Below are positions 22,761-56,760 of a stretch of 64,000 nucleotides of DNA, in pieces. The DNA lies in NCBI GenBank assembly GCA_977030845.1, contig OZ365113.1, positions 38,316,001 to 38,380,000 of the forward strand, in the 5' to 3' direction. Source of the stretch: Fimbriosthenelais zetlandica (lineage: Eukaryota). Numbering within the stretch: the stretch's first letter is position 1; each line of letters starts with the position of its first letter. The position numbers and the translations under genes were made by a program. A model generated the notes under the pieces. That model saw only the letters and a list, made by a program, of their open reading frames with translations. It did not search any database and was not told the DNA's origin.

Positions 22761-25251
22761 TTCGAAGCGTTGGGTTCAATATTTCCGTCGTCTCCCTACG
22801 ATGCTGGCAGCTGAATCCCTACTACTCAGGTCCTGTACTAAGTACTAGGATCCAACTTTTACATGTAACCGGGAGCCAGCGCCCTAGTTTCTCCGTTATT
22901 TATTCTCTATTCCTTCTGCGACGTTTCTAACTCATTATTAATTGAATTTCACATTAGTTTTTCCATTGGAATTTGAAATTTCGCGGCTCTGGGGCCAATA
23001 TTCGCTTTACAAATGACTGTTTTCTGTTGGAGGTCCCTCGGGCGTATACACCCTCATAGAGTTATCATTGGGTGTTCACTCTGTGGCATCGCCCTGTAAA
23101 CAGTGCCGCCGGCTGGTGTTTTCTGTAGGAACTACGGCGTGGCGCTGGAGGTAGTTAGTTCAGCTGTAAACCACCAGCCGGCATAGTCTATCTAGCGGTC
23201 CCCCACGCCTCCACCTGCACGAAAGCACAGTCCCAGCCCTCAAGCGGACGGGAGTGGTACTACAGCCGGCAGTAGGCCTACCGAAATACAGCCAAAATTC
23301 AGGTCTCAGATCAACAAATAATGTTATTTACGAACGGATTCAATTGGAAAGCGTTTAAAATTCGCTAAAATATTTTCTTTACTGCCATTTCATACGAAAA
23401 ATATCAATAATTTTCATTCTAAGGAAACATTGTATTGCTATGCTATTAAAAGTAGGACTAATTTTACATTATATGTGTCTGTAGGCCTACTATTATACTA
23501 TTAAAAGATCCACCTTCAGATCCACCCTTGATCATATATCAGATCTTATCACAGCTAAGCTGTATAGAAGGAGTCGACCGAAGGATAAGGACAAAAGATA
23601 AGATTAGGCCTAGGCTACTGGTAATTAATTGTAGGTCCATACAACATAATGTTTTAATGCGTAGTAGGCCTAGGTCTAAAAATTGTGTTGTTCAAAATGA
23701 TTAAAGGTAGAAAAATGCCATGTTATTCAAGAGTGCTTATAATAGGGCCTTGCCCATTGCATAATCTAAACTCCTATAGCCTACTAGGCCTATCTGTGGT
23801 CAAATCAAAGATAGGGCCTATAGGCCAGACATATTCGACTTGTAAACCAGACATTTTTGTTTAGATCATTTCATATGTTCTTAAATAGGGGAATTTTCCA
23901 CCGAGAAGGTAAGTATAGCCTAATTCCGAAAGTATGAGCTCGGTTTCATTATAGGCCTTCTTAGGCCTATTTTAACCCATTGATTGCCGCTTAATTCAAC
24001 CCTACTATAGGCGTACATAATGGAAAATATTCTTCCAAATTTTAATTAAAACAGAGCAGGAAAATATTATTAGGTTTTTATTCATGACAACAACAGAAAA
24101 CCTACTAGAAATTGCATTACGGTGTGCATCAAATAAGAGCAGACAAAAATGTTAGTTTATATAGGCCTATTATTAGGTCTATAGGTCTACATAACATAAT
24201 ATTATCAACCTTTACCCGTCTAATCCTACCGATATGAGTTCTACAGTAAGATAAATATGAATTATCTAAACTTTCTTAAATTTATAAATAGATAAAACGT
24301 GAATGCCAGCATTGAAATTCTATTTAAAACAATTAATATACTTTAACTCATAAAACACATATTATAGGCTGTACAAACATTTTTAAAGAAACAGTATAAA
24401 GTCGTGTGTTTATAGGCCTATGTATAATAAAAATGTACTTTTCTTAACATTAATTGTATTGAGGTATTTATAAAGCGCACATGCTATCGAAATAGGTGTA
24501 TAGGTCTATAATATATGTAGGCCTACATACATGTACAGAAACATAACCGATATCACTGACCCAAACCTGTGTCTGTCCCTGGATCTTTTACTAACATCTA
24601 AATTGCATTTAACTTCAGTAATACTATAACTATAATAACTATAATATTAGGCAATGTGTACATCATCCTATATAATAATATTATTACTTCAATCGGCTGC
24701 ACATTATCATAACATTTCACAACTTTTCTCTGAAAAAGAACGCTTGTGTAACCAAGCACATTAGAATGTTTCTTTCAACACGAAAGTACTTCACTGAATA
24801 CAGTGCCGAAAAATACCTTTAGATTATTTCACTTATGAAAAGGTACAGAAAGAAACATAGGTGCTTGTTGATGTAGGCCTAGTCAATAAAACACTGTTCG
24901 TCACATAAGACAGATCTAGCATGCAATAATTTGCGGTATTTCCCATGGGGATGTAGTCCTTTTTATATATCTTACAAATTGTAAGAAAATAAAAAATGGG
25001 ATTAGTGTAACCACAGCATAATAACAACATGCAATTCTTTGCAAATAGATTAAAATAAAAAAGGCTTCTGTCATCTAAAAGATATGAAGCAGTCTAATGC
25101 CCTTTTAATGGATGTCCTTCCCCATGCACATTACTCCCTAAATCCGACCGACAATATTAACATAATTTATACAATAATAAATCTACAGGTAGAGTAGACC
25201 TGTACCTGAAAGACTTTACACAAATGCGAGCTTGACAAAATCCTTGTTTCA

Positions 25252-28200
25252 TCATGAAATGTAATGTCTGTTGAATTCAGTTATAAGTGTGGAGAGATTA
25301 CAGTCAACTAATGCCCTGTGTATCGTGGATAAACCGGCAGAATAACCTTTCCACACTCTCCAGGCTCTCAGACCTTGTATTGCTCTCTCTTGAAGGTCAC
25401 CACAGAGATCAAGGCCATCAAGAATGGCTTCTATCTCTGAAAAGTCTTTGCCCTTGTACAAACAGCGCAAAAAAGTCTTGTAATTATGCCCTAGTCTTCG
25501 GGAAAGGAACTGAAAGGCATCTTCCACTAAAATTTTGTTTTTCTTCCTCATTTGTTTTCTAACTTCCAATGAAAGCACTTCATTCCCGTTGCCATCAAAG
25601 GCACTGGCATTGTAAGTTGAGCATGTGCAGTTGGAGGTAGTTGAATCATGCCGAGTTCCTGATACGGTATTCAGGTAGTTTTCGATTGGCACCAAACTAT
25701 TGTATGAAGTGTCCTGAACTGGAATGTTGTACACATAGTTTGGCCATTCAGAATGCTCAACTGCTTCTGCCTTTTTTTGCTTCCTCTTCCGCCTCCCCCT
25801 TCGTTTTTTGACTCTTGTGGCCACCACACTTAAGCTTGTGTTAGTGTCCATTGCATCCATCAGCATTGCTTTGCTTCTGGAGTTTTCTGGTGCCAAATGT
25901 TCTGCAGTATATCTTGCTATATTCTTCAGTCTTACATTGGCACCCTTCTTTAGAAGCATCTCCACGACCTGATGGTTGTCTGACTTGGCAGCAGTGTGCA
26001 GCATACTATTGCCATCTTTACCCTGATGATCCAGATTCGCACCTTCCTCAATTAAAAATTTCACCAGGTTTTGTCGATCTTCAGAACTCATTTCATCATC
26101 AGTGGGTCGGTATGATGAGTCCCCAGAGGCATACTGAAGGATGGTATGACCGTTGCGGTCAGTGGCATCCAATTTAGCATTTACTGTCTTTAGGAATTTG
26201 ATGAGGCATTTCCTTTCTGACACAGACCTTGGGGTGATTATAGCATGGTGAACAGGTCTGAGGCCATGATATCCTGGGGTGCTAGGGTCAGCCCCATACT
26301 TAATCAGCATTTCAAGTATCTTAATGACAAGTTGGGCATTCAGTTGACTCCTGATGCAGAAATTGATAGGACTATGGCTATATTGTTCGGGAGTTTCCTT
26401 GGGATCAGCTTCATGTTCAAGGAGCATTTTCACTGCGGAGTCATCACCCATTTCAATGGCAGTGTACAAAGGTCTGCGTCCACCTTGTCCTGTCACATTG
26501 CAAGGAGCTTTTGTCGTTTCTAAGAACAAGTCGAGAATCTTGTGTTGCTTTTTTCTGATGCACACCTCCATAATTTCACTCTTAATGTCAGGTTCGATGT
26601 TCAATTTCCGCTTGAGAAAAAGCTGCATGATCTCAAATCCATTCTGTGGTGCATGTCCAATTTCTAGCAAAGGGGTTTTGTTCTGACTTATCTCTTCATA
26701 TTCATCGCAATCTCTGTCCATCTTGTTCAAGGATTCCTGCCATTCTACATAGTGAAGTTCCGTGGCTTGGCAGATTTCCTCAGTAACTCCAGCATCATCG
26801 GCTTGTGAGAGTACATTCTCACATCTTTGAGGATCACCGACTTTAATCGCTTTTATAAGGCGGTCGGTAAGATTCAGTTTCTCACGCGATTTGCAGACGA
26901 CACTTCCTTCTGATGACTCTGTCTGATGTCCTCTTAATTTCCGCTTGTGAGTTTTTAGGATCTGCACTATGCTTTTGTGATCAGAACGTTCCGCATCCCT
27001 CATAGGAGTATTTCCGCACCTGAAAAGTAACAGCACCCGATATGAATATTGCGTCTGCAATGATAATAAACGTATTTAACCGTTGAAATTGATTAGAAAT
27101 TGATTTGTTTCAATTGAGCGTTCTAGAATATTTCTAGAATACACACCTGTCCACTGGTCTATAGCACTCAGGGTGCACCTTCAAGAGATAGTTTACAATC
27201 TCGGTATGTCCCTCGCTGCAGGCAAGGTGTAACGCAGTTCGACCATCGTAATCTGCTTCAATTGGATCAAAACCCCTTTCTACATACCTGGAAAAACGAT
27301 ATGAGGACATGCATTAATTGATTTATAGGCCTAGAATCCATAAAGTTATATTTCACTATACTTAAACATTCAAGATTGAACTCAACTGTATGCCTGTTAA
27401 GTATTAAGAGCTTAGTTGGGCTTATATCACTTGAAAACAACTCACTCTTGGATAGTTTCTAATTGTCCCAAAGCTGCAGCTTCGCAAAACTTGTGACCCC
27501 ACTCCAGACTTGTTTCATCTTGATCAATATCCAGCAATTTGCCTTCTCGCTGTCTTTTGATGAAAGAGTTGATATACTCAATAATTTCCTTGTTGTCTTT
27601 CTTCTTTGCAATATCAAGAGGAGATTCTCCCCATCTGAAAAGTAAAGGAACCATTAATTAAAAGGCTATCCTTGACTGCTTGATTTCCTTATTCTGTGTA
27701 CAGTGAAACAGGATAAAAGGACACTGGAACATGTTCTATGAAATGACAGTAAAATGAAGTGATTACCTGTCCAACTGGTTATGAGGGACCCGACATTTCT
27801 CCAGAAGGTACTGGACAACGTGCAAGTGATTCTCATCAACAGCAAGATGTAAGGGAGTGCGATAGTCATAATCTCCAGCCGCGAGATCAAAACCGACATC
27901 AGCCAACCTACACCAGCAAACAAAGGATATATAAAGTAAATCATTTCTTCCCTTTCTCTTCAGTTTTCAATACCTCCAACTCTATGTTAAATAAACGGTT
28001 CATATAACCAAAAGTGATAAAATAACAATCAGACTCTACTTTCTTCTAGCTTTAACCTTATGAGATACAGTCATGTACTCACAATTTCAGGCGTTCAACG
28101 TTGCCTTGAGACGCAGCTTTGGTCGTATCTGAGGCACTTCCTGAAGAAGTTCGACTGCGGCTTCGACGTCTACATTCTTTCTTCCTCTCCTCCCTATTCA

Positions 28201-28464
28201 GATCAGCATCGGTTACTTTAGCCTGCAATTAAACATCCAAATAAAATGTAAAAGCAAACAAAAAAAGCAAATGCAAACAATTTGTGGTAAAAAAAAACTG
28301 TTAAGATATGAAGGCAATGTTAATAAGACACAAACCAATTCTTGCAAGCTTGTCAACAAGGATTCAATAGATTTGCGCATCTCGCCCAAAGGTGTGTCTA
28401 ACAAGCTATCACCGAGACAATGGGGAACATCCCCAATATACGTATTATCCCATTGATGATCCAT
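25252..28464 (-). CDS. Ankyrin-repeat and death-domain protein (~835 aa) with two glutaminase-type ankyrin cassettes
   Basis: Exons (minus strand): 28464-28336, 28222-28083, 27907-27767, 27634-27446, 27287-27147, 27019-25252. Phases are compatible; total 2508 nt. Motifs: GDYDYRTPLHLA..DRWGESP, DYDGRTALHLACSEG..DRCGNTP, several further ankyrin repeats (GRRPLYTA, GNSMLHTAA), KKRRGRRKRKQKK, and a C-terminal death-domain-like segment (LSRRLG...LQERAIQGLRAW...ALVDCNL). The first exon is less certain (weak GTTTGT donor). Confidence 0.88.
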
Positions 28465-41972: not shown

Positions 41973-42359
41973 ATGTCGGCCTCAGAAGATTCTGTCGAGA
42001 AAGAATCCACCCAGCGTCGGAAACGCCAGCGTCGTCGTCGTATGTTAACGGGCGTCAGCCGACAGCGTCGGGCAGCGAACGCTCGAGAACGACAACGGGT
42101 CCAAGGTGTAAATGAAGCCTTCATGGAACTTAAATCTATTATACCAGTCACCAAACCAGAAGATGTGTCAAAGAAGGAAACACTAATATTAGCTGCCAAA
42201 TGGATAGCTTACCTAACCACTGTGCTAATTCAGGATGATGAACGACGAAAAGAGACATCCGATCGCAGTTCCTCTAAAAGACTCCCTGAAAAAATACAAG
42301 AAAAATTCACTGAACTTCTTAGCTTTGACATTGAGAATTTTGTAATAATCCAAAGGTGA
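41973..42359 (+). CDS. Class A (Twist/Atonal-superfamily-like) bHLH transcription factor, 128 aa, orthology unclear
   Basis: RQRRAANARERQRVQGVNEAFMELKSIIP...VSKKETLILAAKWIAYL gives a basic region, helix 1, loop and helix 2 in a single open frame. Confidence 0.9.
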   Translation: MSASEDSVEKESTQRRKRQRRRRMLTGVSRQRRAANARERQRVQGVNEAFMELKSIIPVTKPEDVSKKETLILAAKWIAYLTTVLIQDDERRKETSDRSSSKRLPEKIQEKFTELLSFDIENFVIIQR

Positions 42360-44240: not shown

Positions 44241-47200
44241 ATGGACGTTGACACAGCACTCGCCACTGTTGGTGGCTACAAGAGGTGGCACTTGGCCATG
44301 TTCAGTTTCCTGGGCATATCCGGATTTATGCCATTGTGTTGGCAGGGATTGTCCATAGTTTTCCTTGGTAAGTAGCATATAAATTTATACATGTACATAT
44401 AAATTTGGGGCTATACGGTAAAATGTAATCAGAAAAAGTGCGTGATTATAAATACGGCTATCCAGAGACAGGAACCTTTCAATTTGCTTTCAAAATATAA
44501 ATTTGCTTTCATTGCTTCAAAATAATATCGATCCACTGTCCTTGCGCCTGTACATAATATTTAACTGTATACACGTAGAATGAAACATATTTTATTAGTT
44601 ATAAATATGGATAAATTAAATGGACACTATTTTACACAAGAAAAAATGAGTAAAGTCTACTATTCATTTTGTAGAATTAAGATTTTGCTATAATTTTGAA
44701 GAAAAACCACAACTGCAAAATACCTGCTCATAGAAATATAGCAAGTAGAAAAATGCCCCCGTTTTGAATTAATTCCTCGGATAAATTCCCAGGAATATCT
44801 CCGGATCACCATTGTAAAGTACCAGAGGGCAGCACTCTCAATCAATCCATACCCTGGATTGCGGCCAAGGGGGATACAAATGGTCACTGGGACAAGTGCA
44901 ATGAATACACGAATAGCACCATAGATAATACCACCAAGGCCTGCTCCAATGGATGGACTTACATGAAAGAAGATTATGAAAAATCCATTGTTACTGAGGT
45001 GAGAACTGATATTGTATCAGTTTTGTTTAAGATTTGAATTTAACAATTTGAAGTGAAATTCGTTTTTGGCAAATTTATTTTTAACATTCCAGTGGGACCT
45101 TGTTTGTGAGAAGGATTATCTGGGAGAACTGTCCCAGTCAATCTATCAAGTGGGTGCTCTTCTTGGAGAGATACTATGCTCGGTTTTAGTAGATAAATTC
45201 GGAAGAAGGTTATCGTACCTAATGGGTACGGTAATAATAATTATACTGGGATCAGTTACAGCATTTTCCCCACATTATATATTTTTCTGCGTTGTCAGGG
45301 CTTTCATGGCGGCTGCAGTACTTGTGAGTAAAAATGTTTTGAAAATACTACATTTTTGTTATTTTTAAATTTATCTTGAATTTATTATTAATAATTTGTA
45401 TCTGTAGGCCTATAGTTTTAATATTTCTCATTCATAATAGTTATACTGTAACATAATAGCATTCTTTGTACTGATTTCTTGGAGATGTTGTAGGCCTAGT
45501 TCATAACTGAATACATTAATTACTCTGCAGGGCCAGTGTTGGGCGGCTGAAACAATAATGATGGAAATATTTGATTCAAAAAGACGAGCTTTTGCTGGTA
45601 TTGGATTGGAGGCATTGTGGGTCATTGACTATATGATCTTGGCAGGACTGGCTTACCTACTACAAAACTGGCGACACCTACAACTAGCTATAAGTGTACT
45701 ATTGCTGCCTGCCCTAGTAGCCGTCTGGTCAGTACAACCCTTTGACAATATTTGTAGGCCTAAAATCTAAAGAGTTCTAAAGTAGAGATCTTTTCAGTTT
45801 ATCTACTATAACATTCATAAAAAATATTTTTATCAAATAAGACTCACGTCTGTAGGCCCTACTATATATATAACTATAGGTAGTAGGCCTATTTTGAAAA
45901 GTAAATTTATATTTTAGCGACAAAATATCTTCTCTGACCCCCTCCATGCAATTTGCCTCCGACATGCACGACCTTCTTAAACTCTTTCTGACTGAAAACA
46001 CTATATAACTTCTAAGGCTCGAATATTATTCGACTATTCTTGATTGTGAAAATTAGGATTCTACCTGAGTCACCGATGTGGCTGGTTGCTAATGGAAAAG
46101 TGGAAGAAGCTGAAAAAGTTCTTCAGGATATGGCGCGGAAAAACGGCGTGAAGATTTCCAGAAGACTACTCCCACCGTCAGATCACCAGACATCGGAGAT
46201 GAACTCTCTCATTAGGGAGAATCAAAATGGAAACATTCACGAACCTTTGGAAAACTCACACGGAAATGTAAGATCAGAAAAGCCACCGATGTATTCATGG
46301 ACAGACTTATTCAAGGACCCAACCTTACGACGACTGACAACAATATCCAGCCTTTTATGGTATATATCAAATTTGATTTAAGCTCTAAAAATTATGACGA
46401 ATTTCTCTTTGACCGAAATTGAATCCCTAAATCAACTCCATGCATTAACCATGAACTTTTCTCGTTTTAACAGGTTTGGGAACAGTGTGGTATACTATGC
46501 CCTAATATTAGCAGCCCCATCCATGCCTGGTGATATCTATATTAATTTCTTACTGGGAGCAGTCATCGAGATTCCTGCTTACTTCGTCACTTATCCTATA
46601 GTAGTTAAGTCAGTATACTTTTCCAAAATATTTTGCAAAATAACCTAGTGCTATATCTTTGTATATTCTATTGACGTACAGATAATCATTTTTTTAACAG
46701 GTTTGGTAGACGAACACCTACAGTGATATCACACATCGTGGCAGGGGTCTTTTTAGGAGCTATTGTTTTTATACCAGCTAAAACAGGTACACATCCCCAA
46801 TAGAGCCTGTCATACGGTAGACTCAGTATTGTAGACACAATAAAATGAAACACTAGAATCGGTTAAAACTAATAATGAATCACAAGCATCTGTGTGATTG
46901 ATTCCAGAATCAGGAACAGACCTGGCCATGCTTCATGGTGCTTTTGCTCTTCTTGGTAAATTCTCCATTACCATTTCCTTCGCCATTATTATTCTCTATA
47001 CAAAAGAGGTGTTTCCAACTAATCTCAGGTAAATACATTTATAATGTATAATACGTCTTAAAAAATATCATTTTACAATTCAGACAATTAATGTGCAGAC
47101 ATCTTGGCTTTAACACACATTTTCCCATCTAAAAGGGCAAGCAGTGGAGGCATATGTTCGGTTCCAGCGCGGATAGGCACAATGTGCGCACCTTTTGCCT

Positions 47201-49381: not shown

Positions 49382-52300
49382 ATGGATGTGGACACGGCAC
49401 TCGCCACTGTTGGTGGCTACAAGAGGTGGCACTTGGCCATGTTCAGCTTTCTGTCGATTATCGGATTTATACCTATGGGTTGGCAGGGACTGTCATTCGT
49501 TTTCATTGGTAAGTTGTCTATAACTGAGCTAGAAAATGGTCTACAAGAACTTTCTCCTAAAATAAAATGCAAGAATTAAAAATGTGAACCTTTCTATTTG
49601 CTATTACCTAAAATCTATCGATTCAATGTCTTGTCCTATCCATAATATTGCCAAAAATATGTTCAACTATAATGATATTTCATAATCATTTATAAACGAT
49701 AAATATTCAGTTTCATTGGTCGGGATTTTAATAAAGAAAAGTAATAAACTTGGTCTACTGCATGTATTATTTGCAATTAAAAATGGTTGTTGTAATACAT
49801 ACATACGTACCATTTCTTTAATTAAACAATATAATTTCCAGCATTAACTCCGGATCACCATTGTAAAGTACCAGAGGGCAGCACTATCAATCAATCCATA
49901 CCCTGGATTGCGGACAAGGGGGATACAAATGGTCACTGGGACAAGTGCAATGAATACACGAATAGCACCATAGATAATACCACCAAGGCCTGCTCCAATG
50001 GATGGACTTACATGAAAGAAGATTATGAAAAATCCATAGTTACTGAGGTGAGAAATGGTATTGTATATCAGTGCTATTTAACATTAAGAGATTTGAATTT
50101 GAAAATTTGAAGTGAAATTCGTTTTTGGCAAATTTTATTTTAAATTTTCAGTGGGACCTTGTTTGCGCGAAGGATTACCAGGGCGAACTGTCCCTGTCAA
50201 TCTATCAAGTGGGCGCTCTTTTCGGAGAGCTGATAGGCGCGGCTGCTGTGGATAAATTCGGAAGAAAGATATGCTTCCTCGTGAATGCTGCAGTGATAAT
50301 TATACTGGGATCAGTTGCAGCATTTTCCCCCAATTACATATTTTACTGTGCTGTGAAGTTCTTTCTGGCGACTGGAGTACTAGTAAGTTAAAATATTTTG
50401 AAAAGTCAATACATTATTTTAGATTTCTATTTTCCTTACTTTTGGATTTTTATCCGATTTTTTAACTTCCATAGCTGCCAACTGAATCATTTCTCTGCAG
50501 GGCCAACTTTGGGCGACAGAGATTATGCTGATGGAATTGTTTGATTCAAAGAGACGAGCTTTCGCTGGTATTGGATTGGAGGCATTTTGGGTCATTGACT
50601 ATATGATGTTGGCAGGAGTGGCTTACCTCTTACGAGACTGGCGACACCTACAACTACTTATAAGTGTTGTATTATTGCCGCCCGCCCTTGCCGCCATTTG
50701 GTTAGTATAACCCTCAAGAATACTAAAAGTCAACGTTTTTTTCATCCTATCCATTTATCATTCATAGAAACTATCGAGTTAGTTCAGCAAGTGACAAGTA
50801 TTTATAGGCCTAAGTGTTCTAAAGGCAGGATATTGAAAATCTCTCTCCCTCAACCCCTTTCTCTCTCTCTCACCCCGCCCCCTCTAGGCCTCTGACATGT
50901 GTATTATACCCAGAATTTCGTTGGATCAAATACTATTGTGCTCTTCATGATTGTGAAAATTAGGATTCTGCCTGAGTCACCGATGTGGCTGGTTGCTAAT
51001 GGCAAAGTGGAAGAAGCTGAAAAAGTTCTTCAGGATATGGCGCGGAAAAACGGCGTGAAGATTTCCAGAAGACTACTCCCACCGTCAGATCACCAGACAT
51101 CGGAGATGAACTCTCTCGTTGGAAAGAATCAAAATGAGAACTCTCTCGTAGGAAAGAATCAAAATGAAAACCCTAGTGTTTTTTGGGAACACTCACAAGA
51201 CAAGATAAGAATAGAAGAGGCGCCGATTTACCCATGGTCCGACTTATTCAGAAACCCTACGATGCGACGAATGACAGCATTGTCAAGCTTTTTATGGTAG
51301 GCCCATATACAATTTGGTTTCAGCTTCAAAATGTCTGAAGAATTTCTGTTGCATGTAAATTGAATCCCTAAAGAAATTCAATCCCTAAAGAAATTCAATG
51401 CATAACCATGAGTTTTTTTTCGTTCTAACAGGTTTGGGAACAGTGTGGTTTACTATGCCCTAATATTAGCAGCCCCATCCATGCCAGGTGATGTCTATCT
51501 TAACTTTTTTCTCGGAGCAGTCATCGAGATTCCCGCATACATCATCACCTATCCTGTAATGCTTAAGTCAGTACATTTTTTCACAATACTATCCTGATTA
51601 CTAAATTCCCTAAATAACATTCGAAATTGTTAGTATTTCTGAATATTGTAAGGTGATTTATGATTCTTTTCACAGGCTTGGGCGAAGAGCATCTACAGTG
51701 ATATTTCACATCCTGGCTGGGGTCTTTTTAGGAGCAACTCTTGTCATACCAGCAAAGACAGGTTTATGACCTTTAAGGCTTTAAACTGACGACATGGACA
51801 ACTTCGTATAGATATTCGCCGTATCATAATTGTACTTCTATTGTTCATTTCAGAATCGGGAACAGATCTTGCCTTACTTCATGGTGCTTTTGCCCTTCTT
51901 GGAAAATTTTCCATAACTGTGTCCTTCGCCATTATTCTCCTCTATACAAAGGAGATATTCCCAACTAATCTCAGGTAAGTATATCCGACGAATAAAAAGG
52001 ACCCCTCACTATAAGAATTTTATTCATTTTACGGGAAATTAAACAAATGCCTTTGACGCTGAAAGGTGTGCATTTCCCCTTCTAACAGGTCAAGCGCTGG
52101 GGGTGTATGTGCTATCCCAGCCCGAATAGGGACAATGTGCGCTCCTTTTGCGATCTATGCGGTGAGGATCTTCCAACATTATTAACATAGTGTATAGTTA
52201 AACTTGAAAATCTGTCATCGTATGTTACACATAAACATTGACCTACAACTTACTGTGTCCACACACTAATCCGATTCTCTATTCGGTTTCATTCGAAGAT

Positions 52301-52643: not shown

Positions 52644-54858
52644 ACTTACCTATATATTTTTCATAATTTGTAATACAATGGTAGGCCTATAATTCTGAAA
52701 TATTCTGTTCCTACAAAGTGCATTCCAAGCAAAATGCATGAGATTACAACAGAGTGAAATGCAGCGTGCACATTGTTTTATCAGGGATTATAGTGAGGGA
52801 AATGTTAATATTACATAGAGTACAATTCAGCACTGACTCGTCAAAATTAATGAAATGTTATGTACGTTATTTAATGAGCCGTTATGGACCAGTAGTACGT
52901 GGACATGTGACGGGTGGGAGGTGGGGGGGGGGAGGGAGGGGGGAGGGGGGAGCGGTCACCTGCATCACCAGGCTCAGGCATGGTCATGTAGAGAATCGAG
53001 AATTAAGCTTGAGCTTTGGCATTTAATGTGTTCTCTTGAAACTCAAAGGAAAGTCCATTTTAGCCAGGCAAAAACCATACGTACTACAGCGAAGTTATAA
53101 GCATATAGATGGAAATATTCTGATATGCACTGTTATAAGTAAATGATGATGCATAGGCACAGAAATACCATGCTGACAGGAAACTTGAAATTGGATTTAC
53201 TTTCAACTGCCTGCATGGGACTATTGTTCGAAGTGTGAAGGTTGAGGTTATTCCAACGAAAGGTAATTTCTGGAAATCATTTACTCTGAACTAAATATCA
53301 CATATCATAGAATGTAATTACATACGAACTATGTGCCATTTTCGTCATCATCTGAGGAGTTTAACCCAAATTAATATTACTTTGAATGAATATGGTCCCT
53401 CATATGGCCTGGTCTAAAATTTCTTGCAAAATTTCACATAGTGTTTGAATATATATTATTACATTGAATTATGTCCAAGTCTGCACAATTTTAAGATAAT
53501 GTTCTGTATAAAATACATAATATCAAAAAAATATTGACATATAATTCAATCAGAATACTATTTAGTGTGTATAGGCCTACTCAAATTGCATGGCGTTGAT
53601 TTATAATTAAAAGTATGTCACTAAGCTGGTATATATGAAGTAGGAATTATGTATGGTAAAACTAATGTACTGTGACCAGCCACCAGCTCGTTTCAGCTAG
53701 TATAAGCCTTTTTGGTTATTATTAAAGTGGCTTCCACGCTTCCTAACAGAATAAGAGGATATGGCTTATAGCTTAATCAGGCCTGAGAACGTTACATCAT
53801 ATTGTTGAGATTGAAATAATAGAGTATAATATGGTCAGTGCCCCAACTTCATTTATGAAATGAAGGGAAATAATAATTTTGGTTGTATAAAACATCTGTG
53901 CGAATGAACTCCACTAAAATCAATGATTATACTCGTTGATTCAATAAAGCTAAATTTTAAACAAGTCTATAGTATCTACTTCGCTCAAAAGCCTCACTAA
54001 AGCCAGTCGAATGCCACCCGCCGAGCCGGTTCATCCATATACATGTATATAATTAATGCAGGGGCCTGGCACAGTAGAAAAATGAATTACATTAACACAT
54101 TACTTGACATGAGTCATAATGTACCAGAGCTGAATTATGAAACAATCCCCAGGTTTGAATAAGGTTATGAATCATTGTGAAGAAGCTAACGAAATGTTCC
54201 AAATGAATTTGGCATTCAACAGCTAAGTGATCAGGTTTGTGGGGAATTTTAAGAAGAATAAACTAACGGATCACTGAATTGCTCAGTGAATTGCTTTTGG
54301 CAAGGGAATGAATTTGGAATGCTTCATGTAGGTCCAGCCAATGGTTACGGACTAGAAATAATAGAAGAGGCAAAAGGCACTGCTTTTCTTATTGAGAGAA
54401 CTATCATTATGACACCACTCATAATTATCTAGATATAAACTCGGCATTAATTGAAGAAACTGTGCAATAACCATGGATCTTTTGTATACTAAATGGACAC
54501 TTATCACACAAGCAAATGTGTTTCGAAGGTAGGATTTTCAACCGCATTTTCACACAAAATATTCCTCGATTGGAAGTCAAATTTGCTGTTGGTGATATAA
54601 TATTATTGATGCTCATCGGCCATTCGCGACTGAATAGGCTAACGGTTTATGAAATACACAATTATTTCATGTCATGTTTGATGTTATATTCTAAAATTAT
54701 ATATTCTAAAATCTGTATTCTAAAATCTGTACTTTATTTAATTGCAGGAATCAATAATAACCCACATACCCAGTGGCCACTTCTGGCATATTCCTTTCTT
54801 TCACTGTTATATAGACCTAATGTTCTCAATTCAATTTCTACTTTGTACAGGACGATCA

Positions 54859-56001
54859 ATGGCCGCCATGAAGGAGGGCGGTACCCCAGGTATTGATTCA
54901 AAGTCGGTTGTGGATGTAGATATAGGATCTGCCAGTTGTAAAGGCGGAGACATGGTGAACAAGACACGCAGTGCACCCAGCAGTCTCGGTGGCGATCGCC
55001 AGAAATGGACCAGCTCCAGGAACAACGCCCTCAAGGAGATCCAAATCTGGGCGACCGACGGTCGTGAAAACGACTCGTCTGATTATGCCAGACATTCAGG
55101 CCAGCTTATGGACAATGTAACTGAACAACGTATGCTCCAGTCTAAATTGTTGGAGCTCTCAAAGGAAAGACATAAATTTCTCACACAAAATGCATATGAG
55201 AAAAAAATATTCCTTGATCGCCAACAGCGCAAAAGCAATGCTCTTCGAGAGATGTTGGATGGTCTGTCTCACGACGGTCGTCGGCTATCATGGGGGGAGG
55301 AAGCAATGAAACGAAGGGCTAATATCGAAAATGAAAGCGTTGGCTCAGCTAGGGTTGCTTTACTCAACAGAGTGGATCCAAGAAAGAGAAGAGATCGACC
55401 TCGTGATGCTAATATGAAAGATGCAGATAGTCGACATAGCTCTTGTCCAACACCATCGGAATCTGGTCGCAAGACTCAACTCTCCTTCCCACAAGTCGTT
55501 CCCTCTGTGATCTCAAGTCCTCGAGACAAAAGACTGGTTTTCCACACTGAGCCGAAAACAGCAATTCGCACAGACAGACCGAAAACTTCATACGATCGGA
55601 TGACCAATACAGTATTACAAGTGGCCGATCATCCCCCGACCACTGTGAGATTTGCCGATTTCGATGACACTGATGGACCAACACTAGACATGAAAAATCC
55701 ACTGATATCCAAATGGTCAACCACTTCAAGAATGATGAACAGGCCTTCCTGTCAATCAGCAAGAAGTCGAAGTAGTTATGGAGAAGCAAACTGTTCGACC
55801 CCCTCAGTTGATTCACGTTATGTGATGCTGAAAAAATCCCTTTCGGATAATTATCTCAAGAATGGCGGCCATGTGGATGTTGTGCGAATCATAAATCGGA
55901 TCGAAGCACTTCACATGCCCTCTGCAAGGGCTAGCGAATTGAAACCACGAATGGGACAGAAAATCAAAGAATTCATTAGGGAAAGAGGACTTCAGATATA
56001 G
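54859..56001 (+). CDS. Uncharacterised 380-aa protein, single coding exon, with an N-terminal coiled-coil-like segment (possibly CCDC190-like)
   Basis: A long hydrophilic ORF follows the acceptor ttgtacag (54850) and ATG 54859. The track start at 54742 is a TTG in intron-like sequence. Helical block NVTEQRMLQSKLLELSKERHKFLTQNAYEKKIF. Family assignment is only a recollection. Confidence 0.8.
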   Translation: MAAMKEGGTPGIDSKSVVDVDIGSASCKGGDMVNKTRSAPSSLGGDRQKWTSSRNNALKEIQIWATDGRENDSSDYARHSGQLMDNVTEQRMLQSKLLELSKERHKFLTQNAYEKKIFLDRQQRKSNALREMLDGLSHDGRRLSWGEEAMKRRANIENESVGSARVALLNRVDPRKRRDRPRDANMKDADSRHSSCPTPSESGRKTQLSFPQVVPSVISSPRDKRLVFHTEPKTAIRTDRPKTSYDRMTNTVLQVADHPPTTVRFADFDDTDGPTLDMKNPLISKWSTTSRMMNRPSCQSARSRSSYGEANCSTPSVDSRYVMLKKSLSDNYLKNGGHVDVVRIINRIEALHMPSARASELKPRMGQKIKEFIRERGLQI

Positions 56002-56019: not shown

Positions 56020-56760
56020 TTTTTATCGGCCTATAGGCCCGTAGTTGGCCTACCGTAGGCCTAATATTAAAAATATCTAGGCCTATTATAACAATCATTA
56101 TTAAGCCTAGGCTAGGCCCATAGGCCTACTCAACTGGTAGGCCTAGCCTACAAAGTTTATTCTAGGAGCATAATTATGACCTGCTTTGTGATACCCGGTA
56201 GGTCCTAGGCCTTTTTCGATTTTGACTTCTATAGATCGATTTTGACTTAGAACTATTGATCTATAATTTCTAATTAAATAGCCTATACTATAGAAATTAT
56301 AGGCCTATTTAGGGTTATATTCCAAATAAAACGCGTTTTCAATACATTTGGGACTGGGTTGTTTTTAGACAGACCGAGATATAGGCCCTATTGGTAAAAG
56401 ATTTTTATAGGCTAGGCCTAGGACTATGTAGGCCTAGGCAATAGGACCTAGGCCTAGGTTCATATTATAGGCCTTAAAATAGCCANNNNNNNNNNNNNNN
56501 NNNNNNNNNNNNNNNNNNNNNNNNNNNNNNNNNNNNNNNNNNNNNNNNNNNNNNNNNNNNNNNNNNNNNNNNNNNNNNNNNNNNNNNNNNNNNNNNNNNN
56601 NNNNNNNNNNNNNNNNNNNNNNNNNNNNNNNNNTAATGGCCTGACCGACACGCGTTACGTAATGTTAGATCATAGACATAGAACTATAGGCTAATTTTAG
56701 GCCTAGATTAGAGGCGCCTTGCAAAAACCATAAAAACTTTGTTGTTGTAGGCCTAGCCTA
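56020..56760. repeat. TAGGCCTA-rich tract spanning the assembly gap
   Basis: About a dozen AGGCCT hexamers in total, on both sides of the N run. Confidence 0.8.
56486..56633. other. Assembly gap (148 N)
   Basis: Run of n characters. Confidence 1.

Follow-up and report, generated by a model that had tools for sequence, protein, structure and literature searches.

Glutaminase reportedly carries a C-terminal ankyrin domain, which is found in GLS2 and in the KGA isoform of GLS. In these mammalian enzymes the ankyrin modules self-associate: those of a dimer's two subunits form one shared bundle, which restrains activity and filament formation (PMC10912226). ANKDD1A, which together with ANKDD1B represents proteins with an ankyrin array and a C-terminal death domain, is reported to be an interaction scaffold (PMC6318269). 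The window analyzed here, 64,000 nucleotides (nt) of the Fimbriosthenelais zetlandica genome on contig C19 of a 447-Mb assembly, contains a gene on the minus strand (28464 to 25252) that brings these two themes together. Its N-terminal part consists of two tandem cassettes derived from the glutaminase ankyrin module, and these are fused to a unit with further ankyrin repeats and a predicted death domain. An earlier note, made from the sequence alone, had proposed an undescribed architecture. That proposal stands for the glutaminase-derived addition, whereas ankyrin repeats followed by a death domain are already known from ANKDD1A/B, and the glutaminase module is itself well known. What is new is the combination of the two, together with an intact record of how it was assembled; among the named or annotated proteins returned by word-indexed and HMMER searches, none is built this way.

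Comparison with the described systems shows likenesses and differences in each case. Each cassette is homologous to the whole three-repeat glutaminase module (GAxxGD.. / DYDGRTALHLAAAEGH..DR / W..TP.DDA..) and shares both intron positions, their phases and a 141-nt middle exon with four of the species' own glutaminase genes; cassette 1 also retains the tail. Unlike glutaminase, the gene has no catalytic domain, and its module occurs twice in tandem, at the N-terminal rather than the C-terminal side, fused to another protein. The ankyrin array with a C-terminal death domain, seen here by Pfam and structural models, recalls ANKDD1A and ANKDD1B. These are also the nearest named clusters (score 0.96) in a feature-based Atlas search that queried protein-language features of the long last exon, exon 6. 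However, HMMER and word-based searches found no sequence-level link to ANKDD1 beyond generic ankyrin similarity, none of the best fold matches is an ANKDD1 death domain, and ANKDD1 is not known to carry a glutaminase-type module. NF-kB p100/p105, DAPK1 and ankyrins 1-3 likewise pair ankyrin repeats with a death domain in a single polypeptide, and the death domains of ankyrin-1 and ankyrin-G are among the best fold matches, yet Pfam finds no Rel homology, kinase or ZU5/UPA domain in any exon of the gene.

Gene structure and the glutaminase origin of the cassettes

The exons were modelled afresh from the window sequence. The model comprises six exons separated by introns that all follow the GT-AG rule, and the spliced frame stays open for 835 codons up to a TGA at 25254-25252. 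Guanine-plus-cytosine (G+C) content is 39-49% in exons vs 27-34% in introns. The features are as follows.

28336..28464, minus strand: putative exon 1, from ATG 28464; 43 codons, phase 0 into exon 2
28083..28222, minus strand: exon 2; basic, Ser-rich segment REERKKECRRRSRSRTSS followed by the first helix pair of cassette 1, AASQGNVERLKL
27767..27907, minus strand: exon 3; cassette 1, 141-nt glutaminase-type ankyrin exon, ..DYDYRTPLHLAVDENH..LDR at the exon end, Pfam Ank
27446..27634, minus strand: exon 4; third repeat of cassette 1, glutaminase-like tail WGESPLDIAKKKDNKEIIEYINSFIKRQREGK, linker, first helix pair of cassette 2, CEAAALGQLETIQE
27147..27287, minus strand: exon 5; cassette 2, 141-nt glutaminase-type ankyrin exon, YVERGFDPIEADYDGRTALHLACSEGH..VDR at the exon end
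25252..27019, minus strand: exon 6, whole; 1768 nt, a single open exon
26929..27019, minus strand: 5' end of exon 6; repeat 3 of cassette 2, CGNTPMRDAERSDHKSIVQILKTH.., two helices in the AlphaFold2 model
25834..26913, minus strand: residues 36-395 of exon 6; helical cap, then roughly eight ankyrin-like repeats
25573..25833, minus strand: exon 6 residues 396-482; disordered linker with a basic cluster KKRRGRRKRKQKK at 25771-25809
25255..25569, minus strand: predicted divergent death domain, a C-terminal six-helix bundle; stop codon at 25252-25254
25104..25109, minus strand: ATTAAA, a possible poly(A) signal 143 nt past the stop, recognized by sequence pattern only

Much of this layout had been anticipated. 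The rebuilt model agrees with a last exon of 1768 nt spliced in frame, and both cassettes carry the motif AAxxG..DYDxRTxLHLA..DR that continues, beyond the exon boundary, with (W/C)GxxP. The proposal of four small exons needs adjusting: exons 2-5 do hold cassette sequence, but five small exons precede the long one. Each cassette is spread over three exons, which places the end of cassette 2 within the long exon. One open exon holds both the last repeat of this cassette and the ankyrin/death-domain part, so the chimeric junction is independent of splicing. Exons 3 and 5 are both 141 nt long, with identical entry and exit phases. A Pfam scan of all exons gives only ankyrin repeats above threshold, in exons 3, 5 and 6.

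Exon 1 is less secure than the others. Its open frame, its composition (G+C 0.43 vs 0.27 for its intron) and a weak donor, GTTTGT, make ATG 28464 a putative start. It shows no similarity to the regions upstream of two orthologous loci, L031 and L032, either by local alignment against shuffles or by tblastx of 5.8 kb of upstream DNA, and the tblastx comparison of those 5.8 kb with the orthologous loci reveals no alternative conserved 5' exon.

A whole-genome search with the glutaminase domain PF04960 yields 18 matches that fall into five loci, one on contig C21 (25.89 Mb) and four on contig C1 (35.84, 41.40, 44.99 and 49.08 Mb; together L020-L024). Each has catalytic exons and a C-terminal ankyrin module. 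All four C1 loci lie within 14 Mb of that contig. As the earlier note had observed for the DNA upstream, glutaminase catalytic exons are missing: the genome search finds PF04960 neither in the window nor anywhere on contig C19, and Pfam detects no glutaminase catalytic domain in any exon of the gene.

The cassettes were ranked against the whole genome in six frames. With exon 3 as a 46-residue query, the top five non-self matches (ranks 2-6, E 9e-10 to 1e-6) all fall in ankyrin exons that lie 0.6-1.5 kb downstream of the PF04960 matches, one for each of the five glutaminase loci. The gene's own second cassette scores below all five (E 3e-4), and the first unrelated ankyrin exon follows at E=0.003. 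For exon 5, the top non-self match is the C21 glutaminase, at 70% identity; the other glutaminases come next, interleaved with two loci on contig C11 that are the ankyrin tails of two asparaginase (ASPG-type) genes. Both cassettes are thus closer to glutaminase ankyrins than to the generic ankyrins of the same genome, with the ASPG type mixed in for exon 5. This ranking bears out the suggestion that the cassettes group with GLS/ASPG rather than with generic ankyrins, glutaminases standing first and the ASPG type next. Searching the PDB by phmmer with single 46-residue cassette exons is uninformative on glutaminase specificity, as designed or long multi-repeat ankyrins lead through summed repeat scores.

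Gene structure settles the origin: both cassettes derive from the three-repeat ankyrin module at the C-terminus of glutaminase. In all four C1 glutaminases, the module is split into three exons, the first ending ..LLFGAxxGDxxxxRR, the second a 141-nt exon (..DYDGRTALHLAAAEGH..DR), and the last beginning W/Y..TP.DDA and continuing into a tail. The acceptor of the middle exon, one base and 11 codons before DYD, is identical in exons 3 and 5, the four C1 glutaminases and both orthologous loci. The same set shares the donor and its phase, GAC AG followed by GT, which interrupts the Arg codon after Asp; the 141-nt length is common to both cassettes and the four C1 genes. Additionally, the ends of exons 2 and 4 match, in position and phase, the glutaminase exon that ends ..GAxxGDxxxxRR. 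By tblastn, exon 4 matches the last exon of the C1:49.08 Mb glutaminase, including the tail after the ankyrin repeats, which reads KRQREGK in cassette 1 and KRLKEGK in that enzyme. Since its exon boundaries and tail match glutaminase, exon 4 represents the last exon of the first copy joined to the first exon of the second. The start of exon 6 is in turn the last exon of the second copy, fused in frame to the ankyrin/death-domain unit. An exon-copying origin of the cassettes is clear from these boundaries, and the intron positions, phases and 141-nt exon, along with the genome-wide ranking, uphold the earlier description of the cassettes as glutaminase-type rather than generic ankyrin. Chance ankyrin resemblance is ruled out by the intron structure held in common with glutaminase.

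Sequence identity between the cassettes and the glutaminase modules is 38-49%, with cassette 1 reaching 49% against the C1:49.08 Mb copy; the two cassettes are 34% identical to each other. ASPG-type ankyrins, which belong to asparaginase/60-kDa lysophospholipase proteins, share the DYDGRTALH..DR(Y/W)GxxP signature with the cassettes but score under the best glutaminase copies. The C21 glutaminase and the ASPG-type gene at C11:51.05 Mb lack the second intron of the ankyrin module; in the latter the repeats are contiguous, without the intron after DR that the cassettes and the C1 glutaminases have. The two asparaginase (PF00710) loci lie at C11:15754778-15760000 (L025) and C11:51050799-51054200 (L026), each followed by DYDGRT-type ankyrin repeats. 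In the ankyrin part of L025, stops occur in the frame read, and these may be intron boundaries or decay.

The ankyrin/death-domain unit and its paralogue

Exon 6 contributes most of the protein. Pfam recognizes its repeats as Ank_2 (E=3.6e-24), and in the AlphaFold2 model two cassette helices come first, followed by the helical cap, an array of roughly eight ankyrin-like repeats, the disordered linker and, last, a death domain. The linker covers about 90 residues with a predicted local distance difference test (pLDDT) score <50. Basic clusters occur at the same linker position in two orthologous proteins, P0241 and P0245. This conserved cluster resembles a nuclear localization signal, which suggests that the protein may have a nuclear phase.

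Several lines of evidence agree that the C-terminus is a divergent death domain. Pfam Death (PF00531) scores 13.7 bits in the window protein (E=0.069), under the gathering threshold of 22.6 bits; the orthologue tails score 13.8 and 20.2 bits, so that Death is the top family in all three proteins and below the cut-off in each. A profile built from the three orthologous tails alone and compared with the PDB retrieves death domains in all of its top 26 places, with RIPK1 in the lead (E=2.1e-4) and TRADD, FADD, THOC1 and Fas also among the top places; once paralogues are added to the profile, FADD reaches E=1.3e-11. AlphaFold2 models the domain as six helices with a pLDDT of 82. Foldseek against the PDB returns death domains as all of its top 34 matches, among them FADD with a template modeling (TM) score of 0.76 and a root-mean-square deviation of 2.3 Å over 84 columns, at modest E-values (from 5e-3). 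Fold matches in AFDB-SwissProt include THOC1, RIPK1, ANK1, TRADD and FADD. The death-domain-like C-terminus read in the earlier note has therefore gained profile and fold evidence, backed by the clear Death domain of a paralogue, while the Pfam cut-off is missed. The genome contains at least 29 other Death-matching loci.

A genome search with exon 6 identifies one distant paralogue, on the minus strand of contig C25 at 6228987-6230882 (L019:2967-4862). It is a single open reading frame (ORF) of 632 codons with ankyrin repeats and a full-length Death domain (PF00531, E=2.9e-13). The cap, ankyrin array, linker and death domain are collinear with exon 6: residues 43-391 align by BLASTP at E=1e-21 with 24% identity over 350 residues, and the match resumes in the tail, where the death domains are 27% identical. 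Unlike the window gene, the paralogue has no introns and no glutaminase-type cassette, its examined upstream DNA contains no glutaminase-type exon, and its death domain scores above the Pfam cut-off. P0121 and P0122, the orthologues of this paralogue, are single ORFs as well. They are 66% and 44% identical to it, vs 48% and 37% for the orthologues of the chimeric gene, so the C25 gene is the slower-evolving of the two. A C25-type single-exon gene is the likely model for the recipient of the glutaminase-derived exons. The view of the locus as a chimeric, exon-shuffled gene is sustained from both sides, as one part retains the glutaminase-type exon structure and the other matches the C25 gene.

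Orthologues, constraint and distribution

An exhaustive HMMER search with exon 6 against 1.84 billion representatives found only two full-length relatives in a single stretch, both unannotated: P0241 (48% identity) and P0245 (37%). Below them, the list contains multi-repeat ankyrin proteins only. Their source assemblies lack annotation: run ERR14368249 supplied a Logan contig and ENA analysis ERZ25767047 a contig of 665 kb. The same assemblies also carry the orthologues of the C25 paralogue, P0121 and P0122. A word-indexed protein search, with either exon 6 or the three-orthologue alignment, returned generic ankyrin proteins only and missed both P0241 and P0245. For proteins of this kind, a blank in such a search is not readable as absence, as the exhaustive search recovered orthologues at 48% and 37%. 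The family distribution looks narrow from these hits, in line with the lineage specificity that had been raised as a possibility.

In the orthologous loci L031 and L032, exons 2-6 follow one another as they do in the window and join in frame at AG/GT boundaries. Both loci have an exon 3 of 141 nt, whereas exon 5 measures 141 nt in one and 144 nt in the other; both keep exon 4 and the acceptor and peptide of exon 2, and the half-cassette that opens the long exon is present in P0245/L032 and in L031. Because the parts share an open exon and the exon order is conserved in three species, the concern that they might be transcribed separately is largely moot. Exon 5 is 74% identical to its L031 counterpart, with a ratio of nonsynonymous to synonymous divergence (dN/dS) of 0.09. 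Comparison of the window with L031 shows saturation at synonymous sites, where the proportion of differences (pS) is 0.72-0.92, against a nonsynonymous value (pN) of 0.18-0.32. The locus is thus a conserved protein-coding gene, kept by purifying selection in at least three species. A glutaminase pseudogene remnant was also considered, and it is ruled out by the missing catalytic exons together with strong constraint.

In a tree of the modules built on roughly 90 alignment columns, cassette 2 from all three species groups into one clade (support 99/99) and cassette 1 into another (81/73). The copies cluster by cassette, and the tandem duplication is therefore older than the split of the three species.

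Elsewhere in the window, all on the plus strand, an ORF at 41973-42359 encodes a helix-loop-helix DNA-binding domain (PF00010, E=4.8e-13), ORF pieces at 46040-46381 and 50899-51300 match the sugar/MFS transporter family PF00083 and probably belong, as exons, to a single transporter gene or to two, and a 419-codon open frame at 54742-56001 has no Pfam match. A run of 148 N occupies 56486-56633. On contig C79, presumably the mitochondrial genome, COX1 (10682-12022, L033) has TGA in frame ten times, which makes it a sense codon there.

Assembly, proposed function and rival readings

In the simplest history, the gene would have been assembled in three steps. A C1-type glutaminase gene would have been copied in part, at its 3' end, and the duplicate would have settled in front of an ankyrin/death-domain gene without introns. 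Loss of the stop codon from the last glutaminase exon would have fused that exon with the downstream ORF, and the three-exon unit would have been duplicated in tandem, either before or after this fusion. The product may act as a death-domain adaptor, its death domain joining homotypic death-domain assemblies while the ankyrin surfaces hold client proteins. Within the same chain, the two glutaminase-type modules may pack against each other and imitate the ankyrin bundle of the mammalian glutaminase dimer, which would turn the paired cassettes into a rigid head at the N-terminus and not into a site that binds glutaminase. By this analogy, pairing within the molecule most likely applies in preference to docking onto glutaminase. 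On balance, we consider it probable that this is a two-unit gene, tandem glutaminase modules plus an ankyrin/death-domain unit, encoding a death-domain adaptor whose cassettes most likely pair intramolecularly.

Several points weigh against this interpretation. Exon 1 is unsupported and is not conserved in the orthologous loci, and the six-exon model as a whole was read from genomic sequence alone. The death domain fails the Pfam gathering score. With just 34% identity between them, the cassettes may have diverged in function, and their pairing is argued purely by analogy with the mammalian dimer. The tree of about 90 columns discriminates neither the donor paralogue nor an origin of cassette 2 from cassette 1 vs a second capture.

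The same cassettes could instead retain the surface for self-association and tether glutaminase, pairing with the ankyrin domain of one or more of the five enzymes and either recruiting glutaminase to death-domain complexes or altering its oligomerization or activity. The link between a metabolic enzyme and death-domain signaling suggested in the earlier note is of this kind; it is speculative and argued from ancestry. They are true homologues of a module that self-associates in mammalian GLS2 and KGA (PMC10912226), the genome holds an unusual five glutaminase paralogues, and cassette 1 is nearer to glutaminase (the 49% match to the C1:49.08 Mb copy) than it is to cassette 2. However, identity to the glutaminase modules is only in the 38-49% range, with branches longer than those among most glutaminase paralogues, and two tandem copies in one chain favor mutual pairing. 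Location speaks the same way: mammalian glutaminase is mitochondrial, whereas putative exon 1 has no evident presequence and the basic clusters resembling a localization signal are conserved, which disfavors tethering. We regard such an adaptor as unlikely, although it leads the other alternatives. A bolder version of this idea has the tandem modules mimicking the glutaminase ankyrin bundle, inserting into or capping glutaminase oligomers, so that a death-domain complex would directly switch glutamine catabolism, or the reverse, in an invertebrate lineage that has five glutaminase genes; at present we rate it a long shot.

A plainer account treats the protein as an ankyrin/death-domain adaptor in which the cassettes are now merely extra client-binding repeats, neither paired nor specific to their origin. 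Ankyrin repeats are generic binding scaffolds, exon 6 adjoins the ANKDD1A/B clusters in the feature-based search, and the cassettes have diverged strongly from each other. Yet both retain the full three-repeat unit, the linkers that flank them persist in three species, and the DYDxR(T/S) and DR(W/C/F/N)G signatures are under strong constraint, all of which suggests that each cassette is kept as a unit. This account also seems unlikely and comes next after tethering, ahead of the oligomer-capping idea. Very improbable is an artefact or a decaying relic, meaning separate transcription units or a pseudogene left by partial glutaminase duplication. An unconserved exon 1 and an internal ATG six codons into the long exon would suit it, but the third repeat of cassette 2 lies physically within the long open exon, the acceptor and upstream exons are conserved in frame across three species despite residue differences of 37-63%, synonymous sites are saturated while dN/dS is about 0.09, and the frame stays open for 835 codons.

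The favored two-unit adaptor is an unusually clean case of exon shuffling: two copies of a three-exon module from a metabolic enzyme preserve its intron positions, phases and exon length, are joined to an adaptor gene that has no introns, and have been maintained by purifying selection in at least three species. The gene offers a dated, testable example of a death-domain adaptor gaining a new head, as well as a glutaminase ankyrin domain that occurs naturally in tandem; the regulatory role of this domain in mammals is still being worked out. Its interest is moderate as an evolutionary case and low to moderate on the functional side until a partner is known. If the head does not recognize glutaminase, the protein would be a lineage-restricted adaptor of an ordinary type; if it still does, the gene would provide a direct wire between glutamine metabolism and death-domain signaling.

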